Source of the DNA: Tubulanus polymorphus
Taxonomy: Eukaryota > Animalia > Nemertea
Assembly: GCF_964204645.1 (NCBI RefSeq)
Contig: NC_134030.1
Span: 22,094,210 to 22,158,209 of the forward strand
DNA: 64,000 bases
Reading direction: 5' to 3'
Numbering within the stretch: position 1 is the first letter of the stretch; each line of letters begins with the position of its first letter. A program made the position numbers and the translations under genes. The notes below the pieces were generated by a model. That model made no database searches. It was not told the DNA's origin and was given only the letters and a program-made list of their open reading frames with translations. This document shows, one piece after another, positions 37,313 to 64,000 of the stretch.

Positions 37313-37922
37313 CGGGAAACTAGAAATTTGAACTGCCCAAATCTATCGGGTCGTTGTATCGACAAAAATGGATAATTGGTTTTTATCCAAATAATTGAAT
37401 TCATTGTCGCCCATGCATTGATTAAACAAAGCGCCTCTCAAGAACACAAGGTCCTTTATTAGCTCCGTGGAAATAAATATCAGACCCAATTTAACAGTTT
37501 CCGTTACAGATCTCAAATTCTAACAATTTCGACTTCAAAATACGTAGGACGTATGACGTCATCAATGTAGTTCTAGTAAATGTTTCTAAAAACCTGAAAT
37601 TCGTGTGTGAACAATTCTAAAAATCTTTGAAAATTATGAGTTGAATGAATTGACGCCTTCAATCTTTCACTTCAAGTAACATGAAATCTAGAATTAATAT
37701 ATATTTGAAACTAATTGAGAAACCGATCTGTCAGCGAAAAAGTTCAAATATGCAAAACTGGAATCGGTTTCAAAATAATTGCAGCAGCGACGAAAAATAT
37801 CTATTTCAAAGAATTCTCAGCGAATTTTCTGATTGGACGAACTGTTATTTGTGATCGCTTGTTATTCGACGAAAAGATATGCGAATTATAGTTTGAAAGA
37901 TTCGGTTCATTCTGTCGTGTTG

Positions 37923-40900
37923 ATGCTGTTCGGTATGGATCGACTGAGAGCGCTGTTTATAGCGTCGCTGATCGTCTGGCGAGTTAACATCGCACACGCT
38001 GATCTGTCTGACTCTGTGACGGTTAGTTCGTCTTGCAACAACACTTGGTACCCCGTCGATTCTACGTCCGGTTACATCGTTTCACCGAATTACCCGTCGT
38101 TAACGCGCGGCGTTGAATGTCGTTGGTTCGTCAAAAGCTCTTTACCGGGAACTTTCAACATCGAACTATACTACGACATCGAGCCGTCGATATTCTGTAG
38201 TGATAACTACCTTCTCGTCGGTGAGTCCGATAACAGATTCTGCGGCGAAGGAAAATATGAAATCCGCCGTAACGATTCGATCTCGTTGATGTTTAGAAGT
38301 AACGTCGATGGTGCGCGGGGTAGTCGGATTTATATCATATATCGCTTCGAACGAAACCATTTGAAATTGAATCACAACTGCAGGGAAGCTTTGCACAGTA
38401 TAAACAAATTACAAACTTCGGCAGGATACAAATTCGCATTATATTTACGTCAATGTAAATTGGATTTGGAATGGATCGGGATCCCGGATGGTTTCGCTAT
38501 GAATTTGACGTTCATACAGATCGATTTCAGATTATCTCCTGGCGCTGATTCAGCGACAACTGTTCAAATTTACGACGGATGGAACACCAGTGAACCTATA
38601 GCTGTTATACCAGAACAAACCGGGCATCCACCTTCATCATTTTATACTAAAACAAACAAAGCCATTATCAGTTTTCTACAAAACCAAAACATCAACTCAC
38701 AACTATCAGTTCAGGTGTATAGAATATCTGATTGGTACGTCTCTAATCCGTTAATTCAAATCTCTCATAACGAGTCTGGAGTGCTCATAACTGATGACAA
38801 CAGTTTACACGTAATAACTCGATCAAAACACTTACACTGCTGGTCTATCAAAGTGCAGGTGTTACAGTACGTCATCTTCAACTGGACACGTGATCTCAGC
38901 ACATCCGGTGACGTCATTGGTGTATATAAACTAGAAGGGTTACGCGTTGTAGGAACTGATATTTTACTCGGTTACAACTACCTGGAATCACTGAGTGTTA
39001 AATCTGACGGCTTTCTCGTCATACTGTGCGTTTTAATAAGACCAGGTGTTTTACAATGGAAGATAAAGATTGACTTTTACGTTAAATCTATTTCTATAGG
39101 AGACGTACAAGTCAACAAACCCAGGGTAAGTAAAATTAACTACTCAGCTTTATCTAAATTAAATGTAAACTCTACAAACTATTTTTAGATTAAACTCTAA
39201 AAACTATTCTAAAACCCTTTTGTGATACAATCTTAACACGAATTAAAAGAAATACCGGTACCGAAGTCGTATAAAATGAAATCCCACATGAAAATAAGAG
39301 GACTTAGTTTTAGACATATCCAAAATAAACGGGTTTAAATATATAAGAAATATGAGGCGTAATTAATTCTTTCCATGATTAATTTCAACTTTACACCTTT
39401 TATACTTTTAGTATTTTACATTAAGTATTTTATATTTAGTATTTTTACTATTAATGACGAATTTTTTTATTTTGTAGATATCTCGCTCCAGTGCCAGTTT
39501 ACATCCTCGCTCTCTGTTCCCGACGACAAAGAAGACAACATTATCGTATCGTATAAATACTTTAGAATTTAAACGGAAAGTTGAAATCTATGAGGATAAT
39601 TTCAGACTAACAGTTTTATCAGAGACGTGCGAGAGAGCTGGATTTTATATATATGATGGTGGTAATTTTACAGCTAGACGCTATGGTCCGTATTGTCCTA
39701 GTTATAAATACGGTCGTCACGTCGTCAGGCTGATTACATCAGGAGGACCGGTTACTGTAGTAGGATACGCTTATAACTGGGATAATTTGGTTCCAGATCT
39801 AATAACGCTAATCCACTCAGCAGCAGCTCTCAGATTCAATCCTACTGATTGTGACGGGTATGTTCTACATGAAGGAGAAAGTCAGATCAATATGACGTCA
39901 CACTGTCTCGTGATTACACCTGAAAACCGGCGCCTTCCTTTAGAAAACATTTATATATTATCAGAATATGATTATCAAATTGACGCGTGTTATCCAGCGC
40001 GATACTCGGGTAGAACATGTGACATGGAAATGAGTTTATCAAATCAGTTTCTCAATAACAGTTTCGTATTAAACACTTTGAAATTGTTCGACAAATATCA
40101 ATTCTGGAATTTTAAATTGATAGTTAAACTACGTCGTAAATGTCAAGGAGAGAAAATACCTACAAAATATTCAGTTGGTGTTTCATTTTTCCCGGATAGG
40201 GATGAATGTGGAATCGTACAATCACCGAACTATCCGGGATCGGCGGGATATACTTCGGAATCTTTGTATTATAGCTTTGAAAACCCGATAGAAAATAATC
40301 GAATTCAATATTACAGATTTATAATCATATTTATTCAGACTTTACCGTGCAGTAAGTTATCTTCAAAAGACAAAGACCCAATTCTTTTTAAACAACGTAT
40401 AATTGACCTTAACGATAATGGATTAATTATTCCAAATAGCGAAGTCCAACATCAAATTACAATATGCGGAACTTATGCTAAACGTGGAAATGTATTTTAT
40501 AGTTTAAGGGACAATGATTTGCATTTTGAGATAAAGGAACGCATTCCCACATTTGAAATACAATACAATTTAGAAAAGTCGTTACCAATAAAACAGTTTG
40601 ATAAAATCCACTGTAAATCAGGATTTGTAGATTCGGGAATTTCCTGCGTCAAATACATCAGAGATGAACGTCTGAATTGGCAGAACGCTGAAATGTACTG
40701 TCAACAGAAATACGGAGGACATCTTCTCAGTATCAACTCACAAGATGAAATGATTTCTGTTAAAAGATTATTCGCCACGAAACTGCTTAGAAAGGGATAT
40801 ACCCAGGAGGCGCTTATAATGATGATCGGGCTAAAATTCAAGGTAACTTCCTAACGGCAAAGTAAGAAAAAAAGGAAAATAAAAAAGGATTCGAATCAAA

Positions 40901-43900
40901 AACTCCCAAAATGCGGATAATTGGAATCAATTTGAGCAAAAGATTTTTAGAAATAACGCTCTGTGAAATGACTTCATTCATTAACTTAGTTCTGACCCAT
41001 AACCCACGCCACATTTGAAATAAAAGATCCTGAGGCCCGAAAAAATGATTTTTTCAAAACAATATTGAAGTTAGAGCAGACACCTTCGACAAGTTCGCCA
41101 TCTAACGGAAAATTAGGTTAGTAGGCTAGTCACCTGTGAAGTGACCACGACCATATTTCAGGTTTTCTCTGTCATACCCCGCGTGACATTGCCATGGAGT
41201 GGGGTTTCTAAAGCTAATTGTAGTTTAGTTGTTGAATCGTTAATGGTTATTTAAGTGGTTAATAAAAATGCTGAAACCATTTTTGCAGTCGATAAATGAA
41301 AATGAATTCTATCTTAACAGAATAATGGTTATTACACGTGGACTGATGGTAAACCATTGAGCTACACAGAGTGGTTTAAACCTGCTATGATAAACGAAAC
41401 GATACCAGAAGTTATTCAAGGATTGATATCTCCTCTACGAAAACAACCGATAAATGACGTCAATATGCTGTGTACGGCGATGATACTGAATAATCCACGA
41501 GGATCAGCGAACTGGGTTCGATTCCCGTGTCAAATCGAGGAGACTCGAACAACTTTCATTTGCGAATCGGATAGAATTGACGTCGATTCAGAACGCATGG
41601 ATAATTCGACACTTAAAAATCAAAATACAACGAGCATCATAGAAATAACTGATACTCATAACGATATCGTATTTCTATATGGGAATAAAAATGTTCTAAA
41701 TTCGAATAGAACCAATAATAACTCGACTTGTAAAAGAGGTTGGCAAAATGTGGACGGTAAATGTTGTCAAATGCTCACAGATTGGAACAACAATCGAAGT
41801 TTGGATATTCGAAGTGCTACGAAAATGTGTCTTGACCTTCACGCTGAAATAGGCATTGTAGCTAATCACATGGAAAATGAAATAAAAGCATTAATTGACG
41901 CGTTCAGTTTTAAACACCAATATGGCGCTATACTGACTATGGATGCTAGGAAAATGTTTCAAGTGATCGAACCAGTTTTGACAAGGGATGAAATCACTTT
42001 TATCGAGTCGTTGAAATGGTCGATAAAACCGTGGAATAATCAGACAAACAACGTTCATTCCGTGCTATGTTCCTACAATGTAACTGGTGAAGAGTTGGCT
42101 TCTATAAGCGGTTGTAAATCGTGGCAGTTTAAATGTAACGATCAAAGATGTATCAGCGACCATCGCGTATGTGATACCAGAAACGACTGTCAACACGGTG
42201 AAGATGAACTCGATTGTTCGGGTTCAAACTTACAGAGTCAGTTCCACTGTTCAGATGGACGATCTATATCAATAAGTGGTTTGTGTGATTTCATAGAGGA
42301 TTGTGTCGATGGCTCGGATGAGAACTCGTGTTTTCATCCCCCGTGTTTGCCCCAACAATTCCGCTGTATTAGTGGTCAATGTGTCGATAGATCGTACCGA
42401 TGTGATGGAATCGTTAACTGTAAGGATGGCTCCGACGAGCGGGAGTGTGGTCCGCAACTTTGCAACGGGTTTCTGTGTAACAGCGGTGAATGTATCAGTT
42501 CTCTATTGTATCGGGATGGTGTTGTAGATTGTAGCGGAAGCCTCCAAGAAGATGAACTTTTAACATCGAATATTACAGTGAATCCTACAGTTCACTGTAA
42601 TAATGAGAACTACTGCACGACTAACTTCACAAACTTATGTAAGAAATCTGATGAACAAAGATGTTCTTTCGATTCTCCTCATTGTTATTCTAGGCGTCAT
42701 AGATGTATTTTAGAAAGGATGCCGATTGGTTACCCGGTATGTAGAAGGCTCGAACATATACAAGGTTGTACCGATTTTAAATGTCCAGCTGGTACTGTAA
42801 AATGTCCAGCATCGTACTGTATACCGATGGGACAGGTGTGCGATGGTCGATCAGATTGCCCTAATTCAGAAGACGAGCGAAACTGCGAGACTTTGTCATG
42901 TCCCGGCATGTTCAAATGTGGCCAGGAAAACCGATGTATACCTCAATCTGAAGTTTGTGATGGTGTTGTAAATTGTAAACATACCACTGATGACGAGTCT
43001 TACTGCGACGTTACGTGTCCTGAGTATTGTAAATGCCAAGGTTATTTAATTGATTGCGATGATGCTGGTTTAGTAGAAATTACTGATCTTTTCTCGGCAT
43101 CAACTCGAGTTCTGATTTTATCAGAAAACCGAGTAGTATTCAATGAGTCCACGTTTTCTTCTTACCTCTATCTACATTTCCTCAATATTTCACGTAACAA
43201 TTTGTCTTATATTGTTCCAAACTCGTTCTCAAACCTGCGTAATCTACATACATTAGATCTTACATATAATCGCATAATATCATTGTCCGCGAATACATTC
43301 GCCGGTTTGTATAGCTTGAAAATTCTCTTGATGTTTGGAAATCCAATTAGATATTTAGAAGAAGGCAGTTTTCAAGGTTTAAAGTCAATAATCGATCTCG
43401 ATCTTCACGGACTTTTCTTGTCGTTACTCGGTGGAAATGTGTTCAGTGGTTTATCCGATTTAGAGTCGTTGAATATCAGCAATAACAGAATCAGTTATAT
43501 TTCACCAAACGCATTTTCCGGGTTAACAAAACTGAGAAATATGGATCTTACCAAAAATTCAAAAGTCATAACCGTAGTTAGAACCGTTTTTGAGAGTCTA
43601 ACATTACTGAGTTCTTTGGCTTCTGACGCGTACAAATTTTGTTGTATGGTTCCGCATGTTGACCAGTGTCTCCCGGAAGCCGACCAATTTTCAACTTGTT
43701 CCGACCTGATGGGTAACACTGTTCTTAGAGCAATCATTTGGGCGATCGCTTCATTCAGCTTTGTCGCGAACATGATTGTCATTTTAATTCGCGTTCAAGC
43801 GTTTCGAATTTCATCCTCTGAATCACGTAACACATCCTCTGATATCCTCATCATTAATATTGCCACCTGCGATTTTCTGATGTCGATTTATCTGTTTCTG

Positions 43901-44623
43901 ATCGCAGGAGCCGATTACGTCTATAAAGGTGTTTATTTCTTAAATTCTGAAAGTTGGATAGATAGTTCATTGTGTCGACTCGCTGGGGTTATAGTAACTC
44001 TTTCGTGCGAGGGATCTTTGATTTTTCTGCTCATTCTTACCCGTCAAAGATACTCGAATATCGTCGATCCATTTTCTGGAAGTCCAATTATATCTTCGGA
44101 TTCTGTATCCGGTATTTGCTGTATATGTTGGATCATTTTAAGCATCATTTCAATGCTACCGCTATCGTCATCTACTTATTTCGGAAACAACTTTTACGGC
44201 ACAACTGGCGTCTGTTTACCTATGAATTTACTATCCATCAATGTCCACGCCTGGCAATATTCATTCGCTATTTTTGCTGTATTTAACTCGGTCGTTCTTG
44301 CTACAATAATGATGACGTATGCACAGATGTATAGACTCGTATCTGGAAGCAGGTCCGGCTCGGGTAGAGCTGATCCTACCGAATTGGTTCTGGCGCGTAG
44401 GAGTTTAGTGATAAATCTGTGTAATTTATTTTGCTGGTTACCGATAATTATCGTTCAGTTTTGCGCTGTATTCCGAGTAGAAATACCGAACCAAGTGGCG
44501 GCTTGGTTGGCGGTACTTTTCCTACCGATCAATTCGTCACTGAATCCACTTCTTTACACCATCCTCACTATCGATGTTAAATCTATTCGCGCCAGAAATA
44601 AACGAGTTTGGAGAACTCGCTGA
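37923..44623 (+). CDS. GRL101-like LDLa/LRR-containing rhodopsin-family GPCR with CUB and C-type lectin ectodomain (~1,950 aa, 3 exons)
   Basis: Exons 37923-39125, 39478-40842, 41321-44623 join in phase 0. Signal peptide (MDRLRALFIASLIVWRVNIAHA; alternative ATG 37935); CUB motifs (SGYIVSPNYPS, CGIVQSPNYPG); C-type lectin split by intron 2 (LNWQNAEMYCQQKYGGHLLSINS...IGL / WTDGKPLSYTEW); ~7 LDLa modules (e.g. CDGIVNCKDGSDEREC); LRRNT CPEYCKC plus LRRs; hinge YKFCC...FSTCSDLM; 7TM ending PINSSLNPLLY. Confidence 0.92.
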
Positions 44624-49194: not shown

Positions 49195-49632
49195 ACAAAT
49201 CAGCACTCCTAACAAAATACCAGCACTCCTTGTTTTAACAAAACAGGAGCACTCCTTGTTTTAACAAAACAGGAGCACTCCTTATTGCAACAAAACAGGA
49301 GCACTCCTTATTACAACTAAACACTATAGCTTGCCTTGTTTTAACAAAACAGGAGCACTCCTTGTTTTAACAAAACAGGAGCACTCCTTATTGCAACAAA
49401 ACAGGAGCACTCCTTATTACAACTAAACACTATAGCTTGCCTTGTTTTAACAAAACAGGAGCACTCCTTGTTTTAACAAAACAGGAGCACTCCTTATTGC
49501 AACAAAACAGGAGCACTCCTTATTACAACTAAACACTATAGCTTGCCTTGGTTTAACAAAACAGGAGCACTCCTTATTGCAACAAAAAAGGAGCACTCCT
49601 TGTTCAAACGAAGTTAAAATACTAGCACTCCT
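49195..49632 (+). repeat. 26-bp minisatellite with higher-order structure
   Basis: aacaaaacaggagcactccttgtttt units punctuated three times by acaactaaacactatagcttgcc. Confidence 0.9.
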
Positions 49633-49926: not shown

Positions 49927-52900
49927 TCACACAAATTCCAGCGCGGGTTTGTTCTGAAAAGAAAAGAAGAGAAAAAATTTTAGAGAGGTTTTCATACCGA
50001 CTTCTTTTAACCTTAGCAGATTCACGCTGGAGATACTTTGATGATTTGGAGGAAATTTCACCACAATGCCGTGTACAATAGACACACAGCTGTATTGTGT
50101 CTATCCCACAGTGCAGTGTATAACCACTAAATCATGTCTACGCAGCAGCCTGGTGTATAGCCAGGACCTTTCAATATTCGAGATTTTAACCAATCGTAAA
50201 TGACATTGATACACTGCACTGCAGGGTAGGCAAAATAAAGGATGGATGGATTGTACACTGCATGATGAGCCGAGCGCACTGTCAATTGCATTTACCCCAT
50301 AGCGCAGTGTATAAAAGATTTACCACTATATCGAATCTATCCCGCAGTGCGATGTGTAATAAATGGACTGCTGTATTGCATTTTACCTGCAGTGTATTGT
50401 TAGTTAATAATTATGAATACATCGCACCACAGGGTAGCCAAATGGTGGATGGATTACATACTGCCCCGCGAGGGACACAAACTGAAATAGGGTTAAGGGT
50501 GCTGAATTCTCAAGTGGAGCGGTCTGTTTGTTTAGCTACATAAAACTCGAACCTTTCTCCTCAATTTTTTGTGTCTCGATCCATCGCCGTCTGCTTTCGT
50601 CGCTGCCGCCAGGGGGCGTTTTCTCGCCTGTTTCCGCGGTGATCGTCTCGGTGCACTGTCGGCCATGTCTGAGACTGGAATCGACGCAAAAAATAATTCG
50701 ATGTAAAATACAAAATAAAATTTCAGGTATTATTTTGCAGACGCTGGGCATGTGTCGAAAACAAGGATCAACACTCCTTAAAACTGGTTTCAACTTCCGA
50801 CCAAATAACTGCTCTATATTCTGGGTTTAACTTTCAGTGCGGTGTATGAATCGGTGATAGATTTTGCTAGTACACCGCACTGCGGTGTATTGATGTAATT
50901 AGTAATTATATCTCTTGAAAAATGGCAGCACCTGTCAAACATAGTGAAATATCAGTAACTAACGATACACCGCGCTACTGTGTAGACGCACTATACTGGT
51001 ATTCCCGTTGTTCAACACACTAGGGCGGAATTATTCAAAATTTTCAAATTATCTCCATCACTATAGGGTATCAATAAGTCAGCACTGAAAGGGTTAAGGA
51101 AACTGATAATTTGAGAAACTGGTCTAAAGATTCGAAGTCCATCTAATTTTTATCTAGACCCTGGCTTCTCGTTGAGATAAAAACTGCCCTTTTGAAATTC
51201 ATGCTGAAATCCACCCTCCTAAAAATCCGTTTTTAAAACCAGTTTATACTCCAGGGCTGGGTTTCATAAATGTAGGCCCAGTTTCACGAAAAAGTTTAAG
51301 CCTAAAACGGTTAAGTTTGAATTGTTGAATTGTTGTCCTGCCATTTACCACCACCACCAAAATCGTTCTGCACCGATGCGGGCGCAGTATATCGGGGGCT
51401 GACTGTACTCATTTTTATGAGTTATCAGCTCATGTTCATTTCATACTGATGTAAAGGTGCACTGATTATAATTAGTAGAAGTGCCCGCCCTAGATTAGAA
51501 AATAAACTATCATTATTATCATTAATTAGACCTAATTCTATTATACCTGGTTGTTCCGTGTTTGACTGCGAGGTGTCGCTCTCTAGTGACTGTTCACCGC
51601 TGAAACGCTCGGTCCACAGTTTTTTCGGTGTCCGTACGCTGCTAACAGGCGGCGCCACTGAATCTGTTCGCCTCGAGTCCTGCGTTTTGCGGGACTGCGA
51701 AATTTCAACGTTATAGATTTTTTTCTCGTCCGGCGTTTTACAAATTCTCTTTGTCGGCTGCTCGGGCGTCAGTTCGGAATCGTCGTCGTCAGAATCAGCC
51801 ACGTCCGAATTGCGGAACGTTTTGTGAAGTTCCACAATTTCAGATTCGATATCGTCATTTTTTCTAGCCGACATTTCCCTTGTAGACGTTCGACTAGCCG
51901 ACATTTCCTCCGGCACAGGCGACATTTTCTCGCGTGACATTGTTCGATTCCGACCGCGAGTTACGTTCGTATTTCCGGCCGACATTGCGACATTTCGTTT
52001 AAGTTTTACGAGAATCGAAGCGAACTCTTCGAGCGATGACGTCTGCGCGTCGACGCCCCCTGGCGGTGAACGCGAACACTTTTTACCGGTCACCGGCGCC
52101 CGATTGGTCGGAATTGTTTTTAAGTAATTCGAAAGATTCTCCGTATTTGAATTTTTCCGATGATTCGTTTCGATGACGACTCGTTTTCGATTCCTCGTCC
52201 CCGTTTTCGACGGGGTATTCCGAGGCGAGCGGACGTCGATGTCGGATTCGGACTCGGCGACGAATTCCGGAGACGAAGCTTTCAAAGTTTCGATCGAAGA
52301 ATCGCTGATCGCCAAACGATAGCTTTCACTTTCCAAAACAAACATGTCCGCCGTTTCGAGTGGATCGTTTGTCTCGGGTGAATCGGATAAACCGAGATCA
52401 ACCGTCTTGGGTGGAGTAAACATATCACAGTTATTGTCGAGCGCGGGTGGAATTTCATCCACCGATTCCACTGACATCGCTCTCGCTTCCAGGCGATCGC
52501 CGCTTGATAATCCAGTTTTTCCTTCTCCGTCGCGCAGAGGAGCGACAACAGCTGCCGGAACAGGAGCAGCTGCAGGAGAAGCAGCCAGAGCTGGAGCAGA
52601 CGGAGGAGCAGCCGGAGCTGGAGCAGCTGGAGAAGCAGATGCAGTTGGAGCAGATGGAGAAGCAGCCGGAGCTGGAGCAGCTGGAGAATCAGCCGGAGTT
52701 TGAGCAGACGGAGGAAGAGCAGCCGGAGTTTGAGCAGACGTTTTCACCGGTGATTTCATAATAACCGATTCGTCGAAATCTGAACCGGATTCCGAAATCA
52801 AACATTCAATCACAACTTTCTCTCTTTTCTTCTTCTCTTTCTTCTTCTTTCGGTTCTTCTCTCTTTCGATCGAGGGTTTTTTAGGTGAACCACCGTTTTT

Positions 52901-55900
52901 TTTCGAAGAAGACGAACGTCTTTTTTTGCCGCTTTTTCCATGTTTTGAAGAAGAAGATTTCTTCTTTTTCTTTCGTTTATTTCTCGACAAATTCATCTCA
53001 TCCGGGGTTTTCCCTCCATCGATTCCGGCAGCGCCGTCGATCAGAATTGTCGCTACCTCGGCGACAATCTCCGAGCGGGCAGCGCTCGAACCGGTGGCTC
53101 CATCTAGCTGCTCATCGAGTTGTTCAAACGGACGGATTATTTCCGGCGCTTGCGTCAGTAATCGCCGCGCCTTCGATAACCACGGCACGTTCGTGCGGAC
53201 TTTCTTTGGACTCGAATTCACGACGAACTCCGGCTCCGATTCCGTATCCGTCAAATCCGGTAAGATTCTGTCGTCAAGACAACAATCGCCATCTCCAGAA
53301 TCACAAATCGCGCTTTTTTCAGGAGCTTTTGAATTTTGCTCGACAACATTTTTTTCATCCTGAACTACCGATATTCGTTCCTCCGATTCATGATTCGGCA
53401 ACGAATCGTTGATTCCATCCTCCGCTGCGGTTGTCGTGTCTCCTGAGTATCGTTTAGCTTTAGTTTTATCGACTGATGAACAGTTTTTATCATTAAACCA
53501 GGTCGGTTTTCGAATTTGAACCGTCATCGGTTTCGGTGAGGTTTTATTCTTCGCACTGCTGCGCACCTGCTTACAATCTGTAGATACAGGTACCTGCTTG
53601 TTGGCCTGCACCAGCGCACAGTCTGTAGACACCGGTACCTGCTTGTTGGCCTGCACCTGCGCAAAGTCTGCAGACACCTGATCACCCGCTCGCGCCTGAA
53701 ATGTTTTAGATTTCGTATTCTTAATACCTTCGATGATTTTCTCCAATTTAGATTTTGATCCCGTACGACAGTTCCGTTTACTATCACCAGGTGGCTTCAC
53801 GCCTGTCCGTTTAACTGAAGAACCACCAGGTGGCGTCTTCGATTGAACTTTCACTACCTTTAAACTTTCTCCACCAGGTGGCTCTGATAATATTTGGTCA
53901 TTAGGTGCATGCTCCAGATGGACAACATTAGTGTCTTCTGCTGAGCAGTTCACATTATCACCACTAGGGGGCTCTGGATGCACAATTATAGTATCTGTCA
54001 CTGTAAGATCAGTGTTTGTCACTTTAAGCTTTACATTTTTCCCACTAGGGGGCTCTGGATTTACAAAATCAGGGTTTTTCACCGTAAACTTCACACTTTT
54101 CCTAACAGGGGGCTCTGGATGAATGCAATCGGCATTTTTGACTTTGAGCTTGGCATTTCGTCCACTAGGGGGCGATGGAGCGACGCTATCAATATCTTTC
54201 GTCGATGAACGTTTCACATTTCCTCCGCTAGGTGGAGTTTGAGATAACCGAAGCGCGTTAATACTGTTCATGAATTCATCGACTTCGCTGCGTTCCGATT
54301 GACTTGCGTCCGGTCGACTGGTTTCCGATCGACTGGTTCCTGATCGACTCGTTTTCGATCGACTCGTTTTTCGGCGACTGGTTTTACAACGAATTTTCTC
54401 GGTGGGAGGTTTTTTGGACCGATTCGAAGACGGCACTGAACGAGCGACGACTTTTTGTGAATCTCGCGATTCGCGCGTTTTATTCAAGTTGATCAGTCGA
54501 CTCAACGGCAACAAGTCGTCCTCGGAATCATCACTAGATGGCGCTCCGTCAACCGGTAAATGATCTGTTTTATTACAAGAGGGCGCTCTATCCACAGGTA
54601 GTTTACCTATTTCATCACCAGATGGGTCTCCATCACCGGCGACTTGTAGTTTATCAGTGTTATCGCTAGATGGCGCTCTATCCACTGCTAGTCTATCTAC
54701 TTTATCACTAGATGGCGCTCTATCACCTGCGACTAGTAGCTTATCAGTTTTATCGCTAGATAGCGCTCTATCCACTGCTTGTCTATCTATTTTATCACTA
54801 GACGGCGCTCTATCCCTCGCGACTGGAAGTTTATCCCTTTTATCACTAGATGGCGCTTTGTGTGGTGATTTCCGCACGACCGAAATGAAATGTTTTTTGA
54901 CGCAATCGCCGGGAATCGCGGAACCGCGACTGCGCGTATTACGACACACTTGGTCGTCGACGTCTGCTGATGATGTCATCGATTGTTGTGTGGCTTCGCG
55001 AATCGCCGCGTTCAAAACTTTCATACATTTCCCTTTCGATTTGAATGGAAACGATTTCGGTTTCGAGGCCGATTTACCGCCGTCGCCGCCGTTGTTGTCG
55101 TCCGTGATGACCGCTCGTATTTGCGGATTAATATGCGCCGCGGTTGCCGTCGGTTTTGCGATGGTCGAAACTACTTTCTTCTGCGGAGAATCGAGCAGCG
55201 ACGCGATTTCGCTCAATAAATCGAGGTTTTTCGTGTACAAGTCGTTCGACGCGATTGGAGCAGTCTGAGTCGGAGCGGACGGATTCGGAGCAGTCCCATT
55301 TAGATCAGACGGGATTGGAGCAGTCCCATTTAGAGCAGACGGATTCGGAGCAGAACTTACTCGAGCAAAACTAAGCTCAACTGGAGCAGATCCAATCGGA
55401 GCCGTCCCAACTGGAGCGGAAGCCGACCGCTTCAATCTCGGAGACGCAAGTATCCGAGCGAGGACGTCGGGACGCTTCGGTGATAGTAACAATTCACCCG
55501 CCGCGGCGGCCGCGGAGGTGACTGCTGGGTCATCGCCGGGGACGATATCCAACGCCGACAGAATATCGCCGAGAATATTGCTGTTATCGTCTCGCGACAC
55601 TTCCATGACGACCTGATTGACCAGATCGTCGCTCGTGTTATCGCAACGAGGCTTCGGTCGAATTTTACGAAGTCCGCGGCGTTTCGGCCGAGGTTTAGTT
55701 TTAACCGCGTTACCGCCGCCGGCGTCCGCGTTGAAATCGAGTGATTTCGCGCACATGGCGACGCCGGTATTGTTGTTGTTTTTATTGTTGCGATGCGTTT
55801 CGGGTTTGTTTAAAACGTTGGACTGTTCGACGGACTGGTACCGCTGAGGTGACGCCAGATCCAGCAACGCTTTCAAATCTGAAAAACAAAACAAAAAAAT

Positions 55901-58900
55901 TGAAATCAACCCAAAACTGATTAGCATAAAATATGTTGCTATGTTTTCTAATTTATGCGCATAACTTACTCGGCGACCAATCGCAATTGATCAAATTTGG
56001 AATCAATTTTTCGGGAGTTTTTATGTTCATCACAGCCGCAACATCTAAAATTAACATCATATCTCAATTAGTAAAAGCTTCTAATGATGATGTCATAGGA
56101 GGATTTATGGGGAATTCTTTCTGTTATTTGACGGGATTTTTGGAGTTAGCTATGTGTGATGTCATACAGAGGGATTTATGGAGACACTGATGATGTCATA
56201 GAGGGATTTATGGAGGCATTGATGATGTCATAGAGGGATTTATGGAGGAGACACTGATGATGTCATAGAGGGATTTGTGGAGGAGACATTGATGACGTCA
56301 TAGAGGGATTTATGGAGGCATTGATGATGTCATAGGGGGATTTTTTGAGGCATTGATGATTTTTATGATGTCATAGAGGGATTTATGGAGATTTCTATCC
56401 GTTATTTGATAGAATTATTTGGAGTTAGCTATGTGTGATGTCATAGAGGGATTTATGGAGACACTGATGATGTCATAGAGGGATTTATGGAGGCATTGAT
56501 GATGTCATAGAGGGATTTATGGAGGAGACACTGATGATGTCATAGAGGGATTTGTGGAGGAGACATTGATGACGTCATAGAGGGATTTATGGAGGCATTG
56601 ATGATGTCATAGGGGGATTTTTTGAGGCATTGATGATTTTTATGATGTCATAGAGGGATTTATGGAGATTTCTATCCGTTATTTGATAGAATTATTTGGA
56701 GTTAGCTATGTGTGATGTCATAGAGGGATTTATGGAGGCATTGATGATGTCATAGAGGGAATTATGGAGGAGACATTGATGATGTCATAGGGTGAATAAA
56801 GACTTACCGTTATGAGTTTTCTCCAGTAACGAGACTGTTGTTGTTGTTGTTGTTTTGTGTTTTGTTGATGTTGTTTTTTTAACGGGAGGCGGCGGAGGTT
56901 CGGGCAGCGTTACAGAATCTACGAATTTCGAATTACTCGGCGAGTTGGAGGTGACGCGAGTCAAGGCCACACGACGAGGAGGAGGAGGAGGAGGAGGCGG
57001 AGGAGGTCTCGATGATCGACTGTTCTTACGTAAACTACCGCTACCAACTTTATAATCCAAGGCAGACGGCTTCGATTCAACAATCCGCTCGCTAGATGGC
57101 GCCGGTAGTATAAACTGAGATTTATTCGCGGTCACTTGCGGCGTCTGCTGTGGTACGACGGGCATCGTCGTCATGGTAACCGGTGGCGCTTGTTGTAGAA
57201 TAATTATCGTAGGTGGCGCCGGTAATGATGCGATTGCGTTCTGAATCGGTACCGCGGCCGTTGCTACCGAAACGTTAACCGGCCGCGTATCGATTACGTT
57301 CGAAGTGTAACTAGTTACCGCTGATGTCGTCTGCGCGCGTGTATTATCCGTGTAACTAACGGCAGCACTTTGTTGATATCCCGACGCGACCCAGTCTTGT
57401 TGCGCCGTGTAACTCATAGCCGCAGCGCCCCCTGGTAGTGGACCATTTAAATGCTCCTCGATGAATTCGGTGTCGAAGCTGACGTCATCGGCGGTGGTGG
57501 TAAGTGGAAAATGCGTATTCGGATTGGTGTCCGGCGAGCATCCGATGAGGTGTTCGCGGTGCGCCGCCTCAACCGATGACAACATCTGCGGCGACATGAC
57601 GCGTAACAGAGCCTCGGCCTGAGTCTGCGTGACGATCTCGTGATTAACTCCCGTCGGAGGCGTAGGTGGCGCCGTCGTCGGTGAACACGCCGAGTACGTC
57701 TGCCGTATCGGAATGAACGGCGATTGTGGAGCGCAGCCCGGTGAGGGAGCCAACCTCGATAATGGAGATGGAGCCACCCCAGGCGACGGGGCTACGATGG
57801 ATGTATTCATAACGTCCTGATATGCAGCAGGTGATGGTACAGCAGCCGGCGACATGATTCCACCACCAGGGGGCACTACGAACTGATTCGGTGCTGGTGA
57901 CACTATTCCACCACTAGGGGGCGCTGCAAATTGTTGATTCTGAGCAGATGCCACCATTCCACCAATAGGTGGTGCTACAAATTGATTCTGAGAACCCACC
58001 ATTCCACCAGAAGGGAGCGCTACAAACTGTTGATTCTCAGCAGACGCCACTGTTCCACCACAAGGTGGCGCTACAAATTGTTGATTCTGAGCAGACGCAA
58101 CTATTCCACCACTAGGGGGTGCTATGGCCTGTTGAACAGAAGATCCAGTAGGTGGCAGTAGTGACGCTTTATGATTTTGAATAGTCGGCACTAAACCGGC
58201 GAAACTAATATTCAAACGAGCGTCTGCCACATTGTTGTTTCCAACGACAAGCGGAGAATTCAAATTCGAACACTGATCGCTTGCAAATTTCTCGAAATTA
58301 AAACCCGTCTCGGCAGCTGTCGCCGCCGCTGTTGTCGCCGTGGTTACAATATCTCCGGCGGCCATTGTTGTGAACGCGTCTTGAGTGTCGAGTAAACCGC
58401 ACGTAAACGCTGTCGTCTCGATAACAGTCGGAGCTGTAACGGATTTTTCAACTTCGTGTCGTTTTTGTTCCTCGTTTCGAGCCTCGGAGTTCGGCTGTAA
58501 ATCAATAGAGTCATCAGGTGCTGCCACCTGTACAGATTCAGTGTCATTACAGGTAACCTCTCCCACAGGTGCTGCCACCTTTAGATAGTCTGCTTCCTGA
58601 GTTGACGCGAGTATATAAGAGTTCCCAGCAGGTGCTGCCGCCTGCTGATCAATTGTATCGAACGACTTCAGTCCAACGCTTTCTCCAGCAGGTGCTGCCA
58701 CCTGGTGTTCATTAGTCTCACCAGACTCGAGTATAACAGAGTTTCCAGCCGGTGCTGCCACCTGCTGGTAATTCACATCTACCGTTTCTTGCATAACACC
58801 AACTCCAGCAGGTGCTGCCATCTGGTGATTGTTTGTATCGACAGTTTTTGGTAGAACGCCGTCTGCAGTAGGTGCTGCCATCTGATGTTCATTCATATCA

Positions 58901-61900
58901 TAAGCCTCCGATATAATCGAGTTTCCATCGGGTGCTGCCACCTGGTGACCATTCGTTTGAACCGCTTCGACGTAAACAGACGTACCGCCCGGAGAGGACG
59001 TTATCGATATCGGAATGATTTCGCCGTCACCAGGCGGCGCTGCTGGACTCGACGGTGGCTGCGGATCGGAAACTATTTCAGCACCTGAAAGATAATTGAC
59101 AAAACTTCTTGAGTTTATAAACGAATTTCACGCTAAAAATTCCATTTCTTTGAGATTCTGAATCGGCAGACGATAAAATTGAAACATTTCTCGGTTAAAC
59201 TAAACTCATATCTAGGATGCAAACTTTAACTGCCGGCGACAGGAAGATATCTCATTGCTCCAATCCCCCCTCCCTTGTAGCTGATTCTTTCTATTCACAG
59301 TAGATATTTGCACATGGGAATGGCCCAGTTCCTGATTGGCTGGCAATGTGAACAAACTCAGCTTCATTTTCACTGCTCATTGGTCAATGTCGAGCGAAGG
59401 CTGACAACGTAATAGCTTCAGTTCAAACCTACGAGTAAACTCGTAGTTGCAATAGAGGGCAGCACTGTATCAACATGGCAGTATATCTCTACGCATAGAT
59501 AGTCAAAATAAGTCACTTTGTTATTTCTGTTAGTTCATTTAAACAAGTTTATTGTGTCATTGAATTTGTAAATTTTCCACCGTGTTATAAAATCTGTAAA
59601 ATATGTGTCGTCCCTCAATTACCTGTGTGTTTTAGAGTAAAAAAAAAAATAAATAAATAAATAAACAAGCAGCAAATGTTGTCCGCCACGTCAGGAGAGT
59701 TACCTATTTCGAATAGATTGAACAGCTCATCAAACGCCGGGTCCAACTTCGCTTCTTGAATCACGTTCGTAATATCGTCCGACGTCATTTCCTGCGACGT
59801 CAGAAAATCGTCGAGCGTCGTCGTCGTCGTCGGCATCCTCGTGGCCGTCGAGATAGTCGCTGCGCCACCTGGTGGCGGATCTTTAACGACGACTTTGTTG
59901 ATGGTTTCGGCGAGTCTTTCCTGCAGCTTCTTATCGGCCAACATTCGTTCGACGACCGACTGTAACAAACAGAAAACAAATTGAAAACTCAATGATGAAA
60001 TGTGGCTTCATCCAACAAGATAAAATGTCAATAGACATTGAAACACGGGTTCCCTTCAGATGAGTTTTAACAGGATCTCTACAGATAACAGTCATTCCTG
60101 GATATGAGTTTAGATGGGGTCCCTACAGATCAGTCTTACCAGGATAAAAGGAGTTTTAAAGGTGAAAATTTCAAATTTCGAGGAAGCGTCAGAATCACTT
60201 TCATATCCCAATTTCAGGAGACTCCTCCTAAATCAGTGCACTTTATTTCAGTAAACCAGTAATTCAGTAGTTTTTTTGTAAGCAAATTTTTATCCTTAAA
60301 ACTGCATAATTGGGTAAAAAAATCCTAATTGTTGACTGATTTAGGCATAGTTCACAGTCCGTACAACACAAACATTTCCAATCTCCTATTTCTCAAAATT
60401 GCAGTTTTTAAGTAGTTTTGGCATTTAGCTCAAATGAAAGGAGTTTCTATATAGGTATTTCTATATAGGCAAAGGAGTTTTTAAGGAATCAAGGAGTCGC
60501 AGTGACCCTCTAAACTTACTGAGACTTTTTCCGGGTGTATCGACTCATTGCTGTCGCATTTCAATTTACGCTTGACCTCTGTGCGTTTACGAGGCGTGTG
60601 CCTAAAAAATATATCAATTCAATATTACATCGTGATGCGATGTACTAACAAAATCCATCACCTATTTATACACTGCACTATGGTGAAAACGTTTTCCTTA
60701 AAATTCTGGGAAAGGTTTTTCAATAATAATTGATTAGAATCGGGTTTAGGGTTAACTAAACAGATTTGAATTCCAAGTCAAACTTAAGCAGTAACTTATT
60801 CAAGTGGGAACTTTTCCTTGCATTTCTCGTTTCATTGGTTTGTGTTAAAATTAGTTCATCGTAATCATTTTCAAACTTTTAGAGTCATAATTTTTTCGCG
60901 AATGTTTCGTTCGTTCATGAATAACTTTTCGAAATCGCGACAAAAACTTACTTTTTGCGCTTAGGTGTGCGTAACAGATTATCAGCGTCTGCGGGCTGCG
61001 TCAAGTCAATTGAAAAGGAAAAGCTGTCCACGCTCGCCGTAGCTAGTACGTCGTCTTCTGGTTGTGATTTCGATAGTTTACAGGTCGATGGTTGTTCGAT
61101 TGACTCAACTGTTCCTTCCAGAGCTGAAAAAATCATTCAAATAAATCCAGTTCAACAAAGAGGACAAGAATGAACAATGGATTTGTTAGATTAGTTTTAG
61201 GATCCGCGTAGTCCTGGAGTTTTTCGATGTATTTTAGGACAACATTCACCAACTTGAGTGATATCCGAATTGGATCGTACAGTAGACTCAGCTCAAGTCA
61301 GATCTATCGACTTGAGAGTGATATCTGAGTTGGATGATACAATAGACTCCGCGCAAGTCTGATCTTTTGACTTGACAGTGATATCTGAATTGGATGATAC
61401 AGTAGACTCCACTCAAGTCGGATCTTTTGACTTGACAGTGATATCTGAGTTGGATGATACAGTAGACTCCGCTCAAGTCAGATCTTTTGACTTGAGAGCG
61501 ATATCTGAGTTGGATGATACAGTAGACTCCGTTCAAGTCTGATCTGTTGACTTGAGAGTGATATCTGAGTTGGATGGTACAGTAGACTCCGCTCAAGTCA
61601 GATCTATCGACTTGAGAGTGATATCTGAATTGGATGATACAGTAGACTCCGCTCAAGTAAGATCTTTTGACTTGAGAGTGATATCTGAGTTGGATGGTGC
61701 AGTAGACTCCTCTCAAGTCAGATCTATCGACTTGAGAGTGATATCTGAATTGGATGATACAGTAGACTCCTCTCAAGTCAGATCTTTTGACTTGAGAGTG
61801 ATATCTGAATTGGATGATACAGTAGACTCCGCTCAAGTCAGACCTTTTGACTTGAGAGTGATATCTGAGTTGGATGATACAGTAGACTCCGCTAAAGTCA

Positions 61901-63979
61901 GATCTTTTGACTTGAGAGTGATATCTGAGTTGGATGATACAGTAGACTCCGCTCAAGTCAGATCTTTTGACTTGAGAGTGATATCTGAGTTGGATGATAC
62001 AGTAGACTCCGCTCAAGTCTGATCTTTTGACTTGAGAGTGATATCTGAGTTGGATGATACAGTAGACTCCGCTAAAGTCTGATCTTTTGACTTGAGAGTG
62101 ATATCTGAGTTGGATGGTACAGTAGACTCCGCTCAAGTCGGATCTTTTGACTTGAGAGCGATATCTGAATTGGATGATACAGTAGACTCCACTCAAGTGG
62201 GATCTTTTGACTCATACCTGTATTTTGAGAAGCACTCTTCGATATATCTGCAGGTTGATCTGTGATATCAGAAAAAAAAACAAAGTTTATTTTCATGTCT
62301 CGGTTCGGAGCCAGTTCAGTGGAATTTCAATTTCTGTCTGCTTAAATTCAAAGTAACTCTATTTTCTCACCTGAACAAACGGCGTTAAAAACCTCTTCGA
62401 ATCCAAGGATTTCCATCGCAGGCGTCTTTTGTTTCCGTTTCCTTTTCCGTTTTTTAGGAACCGAGCTGCTAGTATCTGTATGGCTAGATACGGCACTGCT
62501 AGGAACAGCACTGCTAGATACGGCACTGCTAGGAACTGCAGCGATAGGAACTGCACTGCTAGGAACAGCACTGTTAGGAACTGCACTGCTAGGAACCACA
62601 CAGCTAGGAACTGTACTGCTAGGAACCACACAGCTAGGAACTGTACTGCTAGGAACCACAGCAGAAAAACCTGTTTGAAAAAATAATAATCAATATTTGG
62701 TTTTAATTCTATGGATGGTATTATCATTAGCCAATCAGAATGCATGTTTCATTTAGAGTCCTTTTTAGAGTCATTCTTTTTCATGGCAGAGTCTCACGAT
62801 GTCATCAGGTTCAAATCCCTGAGGGAGGAACATGGCAGAGTCTCACGATGTCATCAGGTTCAAATCCCTGCGAGGGAGGAACGTGGCAGAGTCACACGAT
62901 GTCATCAGGTTCGAATCCCTGCGAGGGAGGGACGTGGCAGAGTCTCACGATGTCATCAGGAACGAATCCCTGCGAGGGAGGAACGTGGCAGAGTCTCGCG
63001 ATGTCATCAGGTTCGAATCCCTGCGAGGGTGGGATGTGCCAGAGTCTCACGATGTCATCAGGTTCGAATCCCTGCGATGGTGGAATGTGGCAGAGTCTCA
63101 CGATGTCATCAGGAACGAATCCCTGCGAGGGAGGAACGTGGCAGAGTCACACGATGTCATCAGGTTCAAATCCCTGCGAGGGAGGAACGTGGCAGAGTCT
63201 CACGATGTCATCAGGAACGAATCCCTGCGAGGGAGGAACGTGGCAGAGTCACACGATGTCATCAGGTTCAAATCCCTGCGAGGGAGGAACGTGGCAGTCT
63301 CACGATGTCATCAGGAACGAATCCCTGCGAGGGAGGAACGTGGCAGAGTCACACGATGTCATCAGGTTCAAATCCCTGCGAGGGAGGAACGTGGCAGAGT
63401 CTCACGATGTCATCAGGTTCAAATCCCTGTGAGGGAGGAACGTGGCAGAGTCACACGATGTCATCAGGTTCAAATCCCTGCGAGGGAGGGACGTGGCAGA
63501 GTCTCACGATGTCATCAGGTTCAAATCCCTGCGAGGGAGGAACGTGGCAGAGTCTCGCGATGTCATCAGGTTCAAATCCCTGTGAGGGAGGAACGTGGCA
63601 GAGTCACACGATGTCATCAGGTTCAAATCCCTGCGAGGGAGGGACGTGGCAGAGTCTCACGATGTCATCAGGTTCAAATCCCTGCGAGGGAGGAACATGG
63701 CAGAGTCTCACGATGTCATCAGGTTCAAATCCCTGCGAGGGAGGAACTTGGCAGAGTCAGGTTCAGTAATCCCTGCGAGGTTCATAAAGAACCCTGTTTT
63801 TTGCTTACCTCCATTTTTAAGCGCGACAAACTGATCAATAATATTGATCAATGATAAGCCGTATACGTTAGTTGGATATTCTCGGCCCTTGCGCAACAAC
63901 GTGACGTATTCCTTCAGATATAAACACTCATCCAGAAACACATTGTACGTATTGAAACAAGACTCTTCTTTTAGGTAAC
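49927..63979 (-). CDS. NPAT: Protein NPAT / Mxc-like histone locus body scaffold (~2,590 aa in window; first exon outside window)
   Basis: Frame-consistent exons: 63979-63809, 62670-62371, 62259-62218, 61123-60952, 60601-60520, 59959-59704, 59084-56808, 55878-51547, 50674-50553, 49953-49927 (last two less certain). The LisH-type segment GYLKEESCFNTYNVFLDECLYLKEY matches NPAT's N-terminus and starts after a phase-1 intron at the Gly. LQERLAETINK and DPAFDELFNLF match the NPAT LQEKLAENINK and DPAFQALFDLFD motifs. Many S/T-P-x-K/R CDK-type sites (TPKR, TPRK, SPKR, SPVK). Confidence 0.88.
51547..55878 (-). CDS. NPAT: NPAT large exon (4,332 nt), low-complexity and basic
   Basis: Lies within the 1500-aa ORF; acceptor tttttcag at 55879, donor gtataa at 51546; phase 1 at both ends. 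Confidence 0.85.
53784..59042. promoter_or_regulatory. Clusters of CTCF-consensus motifs inside NPAT coding exons (putative)
   Basis: Repeated matches to CCASYAGRKGGCRS, e.g. ccaccaggtggcgt 53823, ccactagggggcga 54162, tcactagatggcgc 54531/54705/54843, ccaccagggggcac 57863, ccactagggggcgc 57911, and minus-strand ccagcaggtggcagca at 58753. Motif match only; binding not shown. Confidence 0.6.
56085..56792 (+). repeat. Intronic 27-30-bp minisatellite with ~278-bp higher-order repeat
   Basis: tgatgatgtcatagagggatttatggagg units; marker ggagttagctatgtg recurs at 56142, 56421, 56698. Confidence 0.93.
56808..59084 (-). CDS. NPAT: NPAT large exon (2,277 nt) with HQVAAP and APPSGG repeats
   Basis: Overlaps the 718-aa ORF; acceptor ctttcag at 59085, donor gtaagt at 56807; phase 1 at both ends. 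Confidence 0.85.
61251..62212 (+). repeat. Intronic 60-bp satellite, ~16 copies
   Basis: atatctgagttggatgatacagtagactccgctcaagtcagatcttttgacttgagagtg aligned line by line. Confidence 0.97.
62783..63780 (+). repeat. Intronic 51-bp satellite (~19-20 copies) carrying Pol III B-box motifs
   Basis: Unit gtggcagagtctcacgatgtcatcaggttc(a/g)aatccctgcgagggaggaac. Confidence 0.95.
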
Positions 63980-64000
63980 CTAAAAATAGACACACATTCT

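Follow-up and report, generated by a model that had tools for sequence, protein, structure and literature searches.

In vertebrates, each variable exon of the clustered protocadherin genes contains one CTCF site, for which both occupancy and looping to enhancers have been shown. CTCF is also bound by mammalian macrosatellites of the DXZ4, FIRRE and D4Z4 type, which consist of kilobase-long, non-coding units. Transcription factor sites within coding sequence, called duons, are scattered singles whose constraint is weak and debated. The hotspot motifs of the PRDM9 type that reside in mammalian minisatellites erode by biased conversion. Exonic CTCF sites (reviewed for the clustered protocadherin variable exons in PMC7811963) and CTCF-binding tandem repeats are already known, and the arrays described here vary on both themes.

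The locus lies in a stretch of 64,000 nucleotides from the nemertean Tubulanus polymorphus, hereafter the window. As in the protocadherin exons, CTCF core motifs are placed inside exons, here presumably coding ones whose codons would be read two ways. The present protostome gene, however, contains about 30 putative sites, known from sequence, within tandem repeats that keep the reading frame. The DXZ4, FIRRE and D4Z4-type repeats are likewise arranged in tandem with every unit containing a CTCF motif, and many non-coding arrays of this build exist in this genome; however, the units of the present locus measure 39–90 bases, are in frame and are presumed to be translated. As with duons, a DNA-binding motif skews the choice of codons, except that here entire repeat families have this motif as their conserved core. 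With PRDM9-type minisatellites the arrays share a short GC-rich core of the multi-finger-protein kind that is common to otherwise unrelated minisatellites, but in our case this core is the best-kept part and the motif is that of CTCF, not of PRDM9. We favor, with a probability of about 55%, the interpretation that binding-site arrays are carried as in-frame minisatellites in a LisH-like gene, using motifs that are widely employed outside genes.

The host gene

The features of the locus are collected in Table 1. Frames A and B presumably are two giant low-complexity exons of a minus-strand LisH-type gene. The preliminary description had called this gene NPAT, an identity that our searches did not confirm. 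It derives solely from the LisH-like first exon, whose N-terminus we take to resemble that of NPAT/Mxc; the protein-atlas neighbours of this exon are LisH clusters at 0.87–0.90, which is below the counting level and serves as a lead only. Protein searches were run exon by exon, without a spliced gene model. Nothing above noise was obtained from Pfam for any exon, and neither the NPAT nor the LisH family was matched. At E ≤ 0.001 no homologues were found for frame A (1500-residue query), nor for frame B when its 780 residues were compared with 1.84 billion representative proteins, and the exon at 59.7 kb had no neighbours in the protein atlas. The lone match of frame B, a 116-residue bacterial repeat protein, was dismissed as chance. 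Sequencing runs containing the locus, compared over a 5701-base stretch, gave only DNA-like contigs, with no splice joints across the 55990–56788 intron and no sign of expression.

Table 1. Open frames, repeat arrays and single motif sites of the locus (positions in the window)
Feature	Position	Strand	Peptide or frame	Remarks
LisH-like first coding exon	63711..63998	-		reaches window end; basis: open frame
Small open frame (exon)	59618..60007	-	..DPPPGGAA..	one palindromic motif site
Open frame B, presumably giant exon	56788..59127	-		780 codons; arrays F3, F4; singles 57089, 57425, 59027
Open frame A, presumably giant exon	51428..55990	-		1521 codons, terminal stop; arrays F1, F2; single 52053
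Array F1	53784..54238	+		8 CTCF-type copies; spacings 39-90 bases
Array F2	54531..54856	+	(R)-A-P-S-S-D	8 copies, TCACTAGATGGCGCT type; spacings 42 or 48 bases
Array F3	57863..58158	+	(V)-A-P-P-x-G-G	7 copies, CCACYAGGKGGCRCT type
Array F4	58511..58948	-	H/Q-Q-V/M-A-A-P-A-G	8 copies, 60-base unit
Palindromic site in small frame	59862-59878	-, +		exact on -, 1 mismatch on +
Single site CTACCAGGGGGCGC	57425..57438	-	L-P-G-G-A, sense frame	1 mismatch
Single site	57089..57102	+	A-P-S-S-E, frame as in F2	2 mismatches
Single site	59027..59040	+	A-P-P-G-D	2 mismatches
Single site	52053..52066	-	P-P-G-G-V, sense frame	2 mismatches
Single site	50606..50619	+	short frame ..KRPLAA..	2 mismatches; downstream of frame A stop

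The 27 spacings between repeat copies are without exception divisible by 3, and the repeats remain in frame. The four arrays differ in unit length, which supports the earlier view that they were separately amplified. Their regions match only themselves genome-wide, and since both array regions are unique they are not mobile-element copies, an origin that we could rule out. The preliminary description also held the repeats partly responsible for the enlargement of the protein. As the arrays account for some 1.5 kb out of roughly 7 kb of coding sequence, or about a fifth of the exons, they explain little of it.

Motif A and codon choice in the arrays

The sequence CCASYAGRKGGCRS (motif A), the bilaterian CTCF core consensus, has 5 exact matches in the window where 0.00 are expected, and 22 matches at ≤1 mismatch against 0.13 expected. 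Twenty of the latter are located at 53823–59878, within the two long minus-strand open frames and the smaller one; at ≤2 mismatches there are 44 matches, including 35 at 50.5–59.9 kb. Every copy originally placed in the region proved to be motif-like, a few of them with three or more mismatches; copies of this weaker kind lie at 53784, 54102, 54573, 54615, 54753 and 54225. At the sequence level the CTCF core is matched by F1–F3 and partly by F4, where the CCA end is poorly kept. The 23 copies of F1–F3 read as the reverse complement of the motif in the frame [x]-CCM-YCT-RST-GG, with a peptide of the type x-P-P/S-x-G. The coding strand of F1 is x-CC(A/C)-CCT-(A/G)GT-GG, giving E/T/K/S-P-P-S/G/V-G, while F2 uses GCG in 7/8 and TCT in 8/8 copies and the codon before its motif ends in A in 8/8. 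The information profile of the 23 copies is high at invariant and low at degenerate positions, and 20/23 have a T at motif position 15. The motifs had been said to be written as different peptides on both strands. This is true of F4 (HQVAA), where the sense strand is read and the frame is a different one, but EPPSG, RAPSS and APPSGG have their frame and their peptide type in common and are therefore not independent "different peptides".

The motif excess goes beyond what the peptides need, as had been proposed: 2000 synonymous-codon shuffles gave on average 2.0 matches at ≤1 mismatch (maximum 8) compared to 20 observed, and 0.18 exact matches compared to 5. Computed on the consensus peptide of each array, the probabilities of a random synonymous coding reaching ≤1 mismatch are 0.003 for F1, 0.0025 for F2, 0.029 for F3 and 0.08 for F4; the joint chance over the array families is <1e-4, even if F1–F3 are taken as a single event. 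At 2 mismatches the shuffles yielded 10.6 matches. The single copies at 50606 (RPLAA), 52053, 57089 and 59027, which had been included among the sites, fall within this expectation; scattered singles add little and were dropped as evidence.

The alternative that the repeats matter purely at the protein level, P-P-S-G and Q-V-A-A-P-A-G being short linear peptide motifs with an incidental likeness to CTCF sites and with codons inherited from amplified founder units, has to be weighed here. Peptides rich in P, G and S do make a match about 200 times as likely as in random DNA, and the single frame and peptide type common to F1–F3 would be expected. However, it is the silent positions that are kept and not the amino acids. 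The fourth codons of F3 are GGT, AGT, ATT, TCT, TGT, AGT and ACT, that is six amino acids with a third base T in 7/7, and the joint chance given above also speaks against a protein-level origin. Codon usage within the motif is moreover the reverse of that seen in other parts of the gene. The codon preceding Ser/Gly is CCT in 15/15 copies and TCT in 8/8 of the RAPSS array, whereas in the remainder of the gene CCT encodes 22% of the prolines. For the preceding Pro, CCA/CCC is found in 20/21 copies against 29% elsewhere; variation is confined to these two codons apart from one CCG, the commonest Pro codon of the gene (48%). Ser at the fourth codon is written AGT (9), AGC (3) or TCT (1), so that the constrained codon choice noted initially is confirmed. 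Amino-acid changes sit at degenerate motif positions, namely S/G/I/C/T/V at the xxT codon, H/Q and V/M. Taken together with the recurrence of both motifs in non-coding DNA and in other frames, described below, these observations leave the protein-level reading already strained, and we judge it to be very improbable.

Silent-site conservation was compared among the repeat copies, no orthologue having been found. Identity at third codon positions reaches 0.79 within the motif blocks, compared with 0.41 for the flanks (Mann–Whitney p = 1e-8), and an exact test across all block placements gives p = 5e-4, p-values that overstate the evidence because the copies share descent and are not independent. 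The assertion that the motif is kept while the spacers diverge is borne out by these figures. Arrays F1 and F3 even preserve the third codon position better than the first and second. The motifs are maintained at the DNA level, with silent third positions fixed to the bases of the motif. In F1 the motif retains a third-position identity of 0.70 and the flanks, at 0.33, are almost wholly diverged; with flanks this near saturation, either selection or continuing turnover is needed to account for the motif.

Array F4 and motif B

The conserved core of F4 is a 20-base sequence, CAGRTGGCAGCACCTGCTGG (motif B), present with 0–3 mismatches in each copy. The HQVAA repeat had been counted as a CTCF array. 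Motif B does overlap the 3′ two-thirds of the CTCF consensus, but it describes the array better than the CTCF core, and its other genomic sites are without the CCA half. A random synonymous coding of the F4 peptide reaches motif B at ≤1 mismatch with a probability of 0.005. Genome-wide we found 193 matches to motif B and 0 to a control, mostly in non-coding DNA. The loci have unrelated flanks, and stops interrupt the QVAAPAG frame at 11/14 independent loci. At three other motif-B sites the DNA may likewise encode QVAAPxG, which could be cited in favor of the protein-level reading. No report of motif B was found in the literature.

An imperfect inverted repeat (CAGGTG..CACCTG) constitutes the F4 core, and a small hairpin might fold from it. 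Such a hairpin would be compatible with an RNA-level element, a binding site or structure in the transcript constraining the silent sites. Motif A is present, however, in both orientations within the one presumed transcript, and again in both orientations in DNA that does not look transcribed. Occurrence in both orientations fits recognition of double-stranded DNA, and an RNA element seems to us scarcely credible as the source of the constraint.

The motifs across the genome

In the 268-Mb genome, motif A has 1245 exact matches, 659 forward and 586 reverse, against 16 for a reversed control, an over-representation as would be expected of a site in use. The sampled sites are mostly isolated and non-coding, and part of the excess traces to dispersed repeat families containing the motif. 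No paper linking CTCF to Helentron arrays was found in the literature. There are also non-coding minisatellites in which every unit has one copy of the motif; one of them consists of 24 co-oriented copies spaced 61 bases apart. The P-P-P-S-G repeats of a further gene are encoded by the motif in one orientation or the other, and a nearby 2795-codon exon contains 3 motif sites in other frames. The T at position 15, strong in the arrays, is weak in isolated genomic sites (40%) and was abandoned as a general rule. Since the motif is kept at silent positions and recurs in non-coding DNA, the DNA itself seems constrained.

An alternative is that the arrays themselves do nothing. The motif or a protein bound to it might promote local tandem duplication, for instance through stalled replication or breaks, in which case units that keep the motif would go on duplicating, also in tolerant coding regions, and the arrays would be idle by-products. 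Motif-centred minisatellites are indeed common in the non-coding DNA of this genome, and arrays whose units are otherwise quite unlike have the motif as their core. When the reference is compared with another individual, about 3 of 40 listed differences fall in the motif, which makes up about 9% of the bases; there is no polymorphism deficit, and two of the three changes keep the motif while one breaks it. On the other hand, the window also contains minisatellites without the motif (at 29.2–29.8, 61.3–62.2 and 62.7–63.9 kb, and several more inside the exons), so that the motif is not needed for amplification, and the contrast between motif and flanks in F1 requires selection or continuing turnover. 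We consider idle arrays unlikely, although they deserve to be taken seriously.

A broader proposal, which we regard as possible but doubtful, is that a genome-wide system keeps the motifs of multi-finger proteins, CTCF for motif A and another factor for motif B, as minisatellite arrays wherever they are tolerated, exons included. Whole repeat families of disordered proteins may in that case merely accompany chromatin-binding DNA that is itself under selection, and motif B may represent a new type of architectural or regulatory site.

CTCF and the possible role of the arrays

The gene for CTCF, on which the initial proposal depended, is present as a single locus (G000:C3:3430376-3432127). It is collinear with the zinc fingers of human CTCF (PDB 7w1m; E = 4e-68) and shares 70–86% identity with named CTCF proteins from arthropods, priapulids and bivalves, whereas all other finger genes of the genome reach ≤46%. 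Motif A would be bound by this single orthologue, and motif B probably by another factor or by CTCF in another mode.

In the model that we favor, four in-frame minisatellites would be hosted by a minus-strand gene whose first exon is LisH-like and which has two giant exons of low complexity. Each minisatellite would be built round a DNA motif of the protein-binding type: motif A with T at position 15 in F1–F3, and motif B in F4. The P-P-S-G and Q-V-A-A-P-A-G peptides would largely be passengers of the arrays, tolerated in a disordered protein region. Candidate effects, if the sites are bound, are local chromatin opening, polymerase pausing or a boundary. Binding would also make the arrays an unusually clear case in which selection on DNA-binding sites has shaped a protein sequence, since the prolines that are conserved and the fourth residue that is free track the information content of the motif and not that of a peptide. 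The arrays offer an entry point to the role of CTCF in a protostome, an animal for which no loop anchoring is expected, and their analysis defines motif B, 20 bases long, as a second motif that is abundant.

A vertebrate-style loop anchor is a less likely version of this role. The idea that the arrays are selected as an exon-placed chromatin insulator or cohesin loop anchor draws on the match of the motif to the CTCF core, the presence of a CTCF gene and the density and co-orientation of the sites; in vertebrates, CTCF-bound tandem repeats anchor long-range contacts. However, the plus-strand copies (53.8–58.2 kb) and the minus-strand copies (58.5–59.9 kb) form blocks that face each other over about 350 bases, the reverse of a vertebrate boundary arrangement. 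Loop frequency and insulation at protostome CTCF sites are moreover reported to be at a neutral baseline, and cohesin halting to have arisen in chordates (preprint 10.64898/2026.10.19.760054). An insulator or anchor function is in our opinion quite improbable. With sites 42–60 bases apart, all of them could hardly be occupied simultaneously.

A minus-strand gene with four in-frame motif arrays

Two motifs are maintained at the DNA level inside the in-frame repeats of one gene: motif A, the CTCF consensus CCASYAGRKGGCRS, and motif B, a 20-base motif CAGRTGGCAGCACCTGCTGG. An open-frame survey of the window (G000:C6:22094210-22158209, in an assembly of 268 Mb) places the studied region in the body of a minus-strand gene whose large frames A and B encode a low-complexity protein with several tandem repeats. 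Motif A has 5 exact matches in the window against a chance expectation of 0.00, and 22 with at most one mismatch (0.13 expected), 20 of them within 53.8-59.9 kb; at up to two mismatches there are 44, with 35 inside 50.5-59.9 kb. These counts bear out the motif coordinates of the preliminary description. Besides the four arrays F1-F4 only a handful of single sites is present. Neighbouring motif copies stand a multiple of three bases apart in all 27 cases, which argues for translation of the arrays in these putative exons; the non-coding arrays with the CTCF motif elsewhere have units of 61 or 154 bases.

Features of the window and of the Tubulanus polymorphus genome (G000; C1, C3 and C6 are contigs)
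Feature	Location	Strand	Description
Frame A	window 51428-55990	-	open frame, 1521 codons
Frame B	window 56788-59127	-	open frame, 780 codons
Small exon-like frame	window 59618-60007	-	130 codons
LisH-like first exon	window 63711-63998	-	extends to the window end
F1 (EPPSG type)	window 53784-54238		8 copies, frame A
F2 (RAPSS)	window 54531-54856		8 copies, frame A
F3 (APPSGG)	window 57863-58158		7 copies, frame B
F4 (HQVAAPAG)	window 58511-58948		8 copies, frame B; orientation opposite to F1-F3
Tandem array with CTCF motif	window 6875-7601	+	unit of 154 bases (134 in the last part); TCACCAGGGGGCGT in every unit
Minisatellite	G000:C1:31733336-31734825		non-coding; ~24 co-oriented CTCF-type motifs, 61-base unit; variant CCGCTAGGGGGCAG in half the copies
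Q-rich open frame	G000:C1:28144897-28146102		402 codons; Y-T-P-P-P-S-G repeats
Single open frame/exon	G000:C6:22192782-22201166		2795 codons; 35 kb past the window
CTCF locus	G000:C3:3430376-3432127		sole orthologue in the genome

In F1, F2 and F3 the motif is read as its reverse complement in one register, [x]-CCM-YCT-RST-GG, giving x-P-P/S-x-G, while F4 uses a sense register, and the sites at 52053, 57425 and 59862 are read in the sense register as P-P/L-G-G-A/V. The unit lengths of F1-F3 differ and their flanks are unrelated, in agreement with the proposal that the coding repeats were amplified separately, although the three may share an ancestral unit. They therefore fall short of the different peptides originally meant: F1-F3 represent one register and one peptide type, and other registers are seen in F4 and the three sense-register sites.

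The gene had been assigned to NPAT. All gene-identity and protein searches took the exons singly, and they detected no NPAT family or NPAT homologue for this gene. The tentative assignment is based on the first exon, whose N-terminus has a weak match to LisH and may resemble that of NPAT. The only public runs that contain the locus look like genomic contigs, with the intron covered and the splice joint absent. Nor do the arrays explain much of the enlargement of the protein, as had been suggested, since F1-F4 combined make up ~1.5 kb of ~7 kb coding sequence; the remainder consists of motif-free repeats (27, 45, 15 and 30 bases) and non-repetitive low-complexity sequence. The CpG observed/expected ratio is 1.5 in the exon at 51428-55870 and 1.2 at 56788-59100, compared with 1.0 for the whole window, and the codons CCG, TCG and GCG are favoured; the gene thus carries no sign of germline CpG methylation.

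Codon choice and silent sites

Peptides rich in P, G and S make the motif more likely by themselves, and codon choice raises the count another tenfold. In 2000 shuffles that exchanged synonymous codons between sites with the same residue, exact matches averaged 0.18 (maximum 3) against 5 observed; the corresponding values were 2.0 (maximum 8) against 20 at up to one mismatch, and 10.6 (maximum 24) against 33 at up to two. Shuffled exons therefore do not yield a similar motif count. Since repeat copies share descent, the arrays were also scored as single events: a consensus peptide coded at random with synonymous codons lies within one mismatch of the motif with a probability of 0.003 (F1), 0.0025 (F2), 0.029 (F3) and 0.08 (F4). 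Codon usage in the motif opposes that of the gene itself, as expected if the motif constrains it. Elsewhere in the gene proline is coded by CCG (48%), CCT (22%), CCA (20%) and CCC (9%), whereas in the motif 20 of 21 copies use CCA or CCC for the first proline, followed by CCT (15 of 15) or, in F2, by TCT (8 of 8).

Silent positions were compared in codon-anchored alignments of each array, setting the motif blocks against seven flanking codons on each side. Between copies, third-position identity reaches 0.79 within the motif blocks, compared with 0.41 for the flanks (Mann-Whitney p = 1e-8); an exact test that tries every position of a five-codon block gives p = 5e-4. As the copies are non-independent samples, these p-values set a ceiling on how strong the evidence is. 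F1 has flanks close to saturation (0.33) and a motif at 0.70, and in the motifs of F1 and F3 third positions are kept better than first and second ones. The variation that remains between copies tracks the degeneracy of the motif. The fourth codon of F3 reads GGT, AGT, ATT, TCT, TGT, AGT and ACT, six amino acids with the third base always T; the first proline of the motif switches only between CCA and CCC; and the variable residues of F4 are H/Q and V/M. In 20 of 23 copies the codon preceding the motif has A as its third base, which places T at motif position 15, where it is likewise found in non-coding arrays of this genome. Given this retention of silent sites and variation that follows the degeneracy, the DNA motif explains the conservation of the peptide, and the peptide does not explain that of the motif. 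As far as one genome can show, the constraint on the DNA that the preliminary description had proposed is thus supported. The peptide repeats would be passengers in a disordered region.

A second motif in F4

The conserved block of F4 runs from CTCF position 5 to nine bases beyond the core, and the CCA end is poorly kept. Motif B occurs 193 times in the genome at up to two mismatches, against 0 for the reversed control, and the F4 copies differ from it by 0, 0, 1, 1, 2, 2, 2 and 3 bases; the chance that QVAAPAG is coded within one mismatch of it is 0.005. F4 accordingly consists of copies of a second DNA motif that occurs across the genome. What stands of its description as a CTCF array is the AGRTGGCAG that motif B and the CTCF core have in common. 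The 16 motif B loci fetched with at most one mismatch, 14 of them independent, have unrelated flanks. They show no CCAS preference at the four bases where CTCF would need it, and 11 of the independent loci have stop codons only a few triplets away in the frame that would read QVAAPAG. Genomic occurrences are mostly non-coding and sometimes paired, 30-50 bases apart. Part of the count of 193 comes from a dispersed repeat family with CAGATGGCAGCACCGGCTGA, perhaps a mobile element that carries motif B. This family is seen at G000:C1:13.6-14.3 Mb and C2:10.99 Mb, with an inverted GCCATCTT half-site ~10 bases upstream of CAGATGGCAGCACCGGCTGA.

We found no description of motif B in the literature. 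Our prediction is that motif A in the arrays is bound by CTCF and motif B by another factor, or possibly by CTCF in a different binding mode. Exonic CTCF sites, CTCF-bearing tandem repeats and dual-use codons are the known kinds nearest to this finding, which is extended by the second, undescribed motif.

CTCF and the genomic setting

A search that started from a degenerate pattern for a CTCF finger peptide gave one genomic match. The frames of this locus are collinear with human CTCF fingers 1-4 and 7-9 (PDB; E = 4e-68 and 9e-42) and 70-86% identical to proteins named CTCF from insects, a priapulid and a bivalve. With a bivalve CTCF as query the locus reaches 63-86% identity and all other finger genes at most 46%. 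The organism is accordingly a protostome with one CTCF gene, and the proposal does not fail for want of the protein. The orthologue has a Q/H-rich N-terminal region, and its fingers are spread across several exons.

The preliminary description had seen in the arrays an insulator or loop anchor. As a loop anchor they appear unlikely from their layout: the two orientation blocks face each other with ~350 bases between them, and the sites are spaced 42-60 bases apart. Moreover, loop frequency and insulation at protostome CTCF sites are reported to be at baseline, and cohesin halting to have arisen in chordates (preprint 10.64898/2026.10.19.760054). A fourth point against the loop anchor is that between the reference and another individual the motifs show no deficit of differences, with ~3 of 40 listed differences in ~9% of bases.

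The CTCF consensus occurs 1245 times in the genome (reversed control, 16). Among 40 sampled sites most are isolated, in AT-rich surroundings without long open frames; several groups have common diverged flanks, so dispersed repeat families add to the count. Clusters of the motif elsewhere are non-coding minisatellites. A real rival is that the motif itself drives tandem duplication, which would leave the arrays as by-products with no function. It is opposed by the several minisatellites of this window, and of these very exons, that have no such motif, and by the retention of the motif in old arrays. F1-F4 have no match elsewhere in the genome and thus arose locally. In the Q-rich frame the peptide Y-T-P-P-P-S-G carries the motif in sense in one copy and in antisense in two, through differing codons, and three CTCF-type sites, each in a reading register of its own, lie towards the 3' end of the 2795-codon exon.

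Other repeats and frames in the window

The intron between frames A and B holds a composite 32/277-base tandem repeat (56087-56790). Public runs cover it with contigs at 20 to 100 times the depth of its flanks, which marks it as a member of an abundant family, dispersed or satellite. At 49210-49604, immediately downstream of the gene, a 26-base hairpin unit (AACAAAACAGGAGCACTCCTTGTTTT) is repeated 15 times. In the minisatellites at 29188-29807, 61291-62211 and 62711-63854 two or three frames are open for 200-350 codons; none of the three has a CTCF-type motif, and two sit in introns of the studied gene. Three plus-strand open frames lie within 37833-44623, with 451, 355 and 1088 codons; judged by eye, the 1088-codon frame looks like a single-exon LDLa-LRR-seven-helix receptor of the relaxin/LGR type C.
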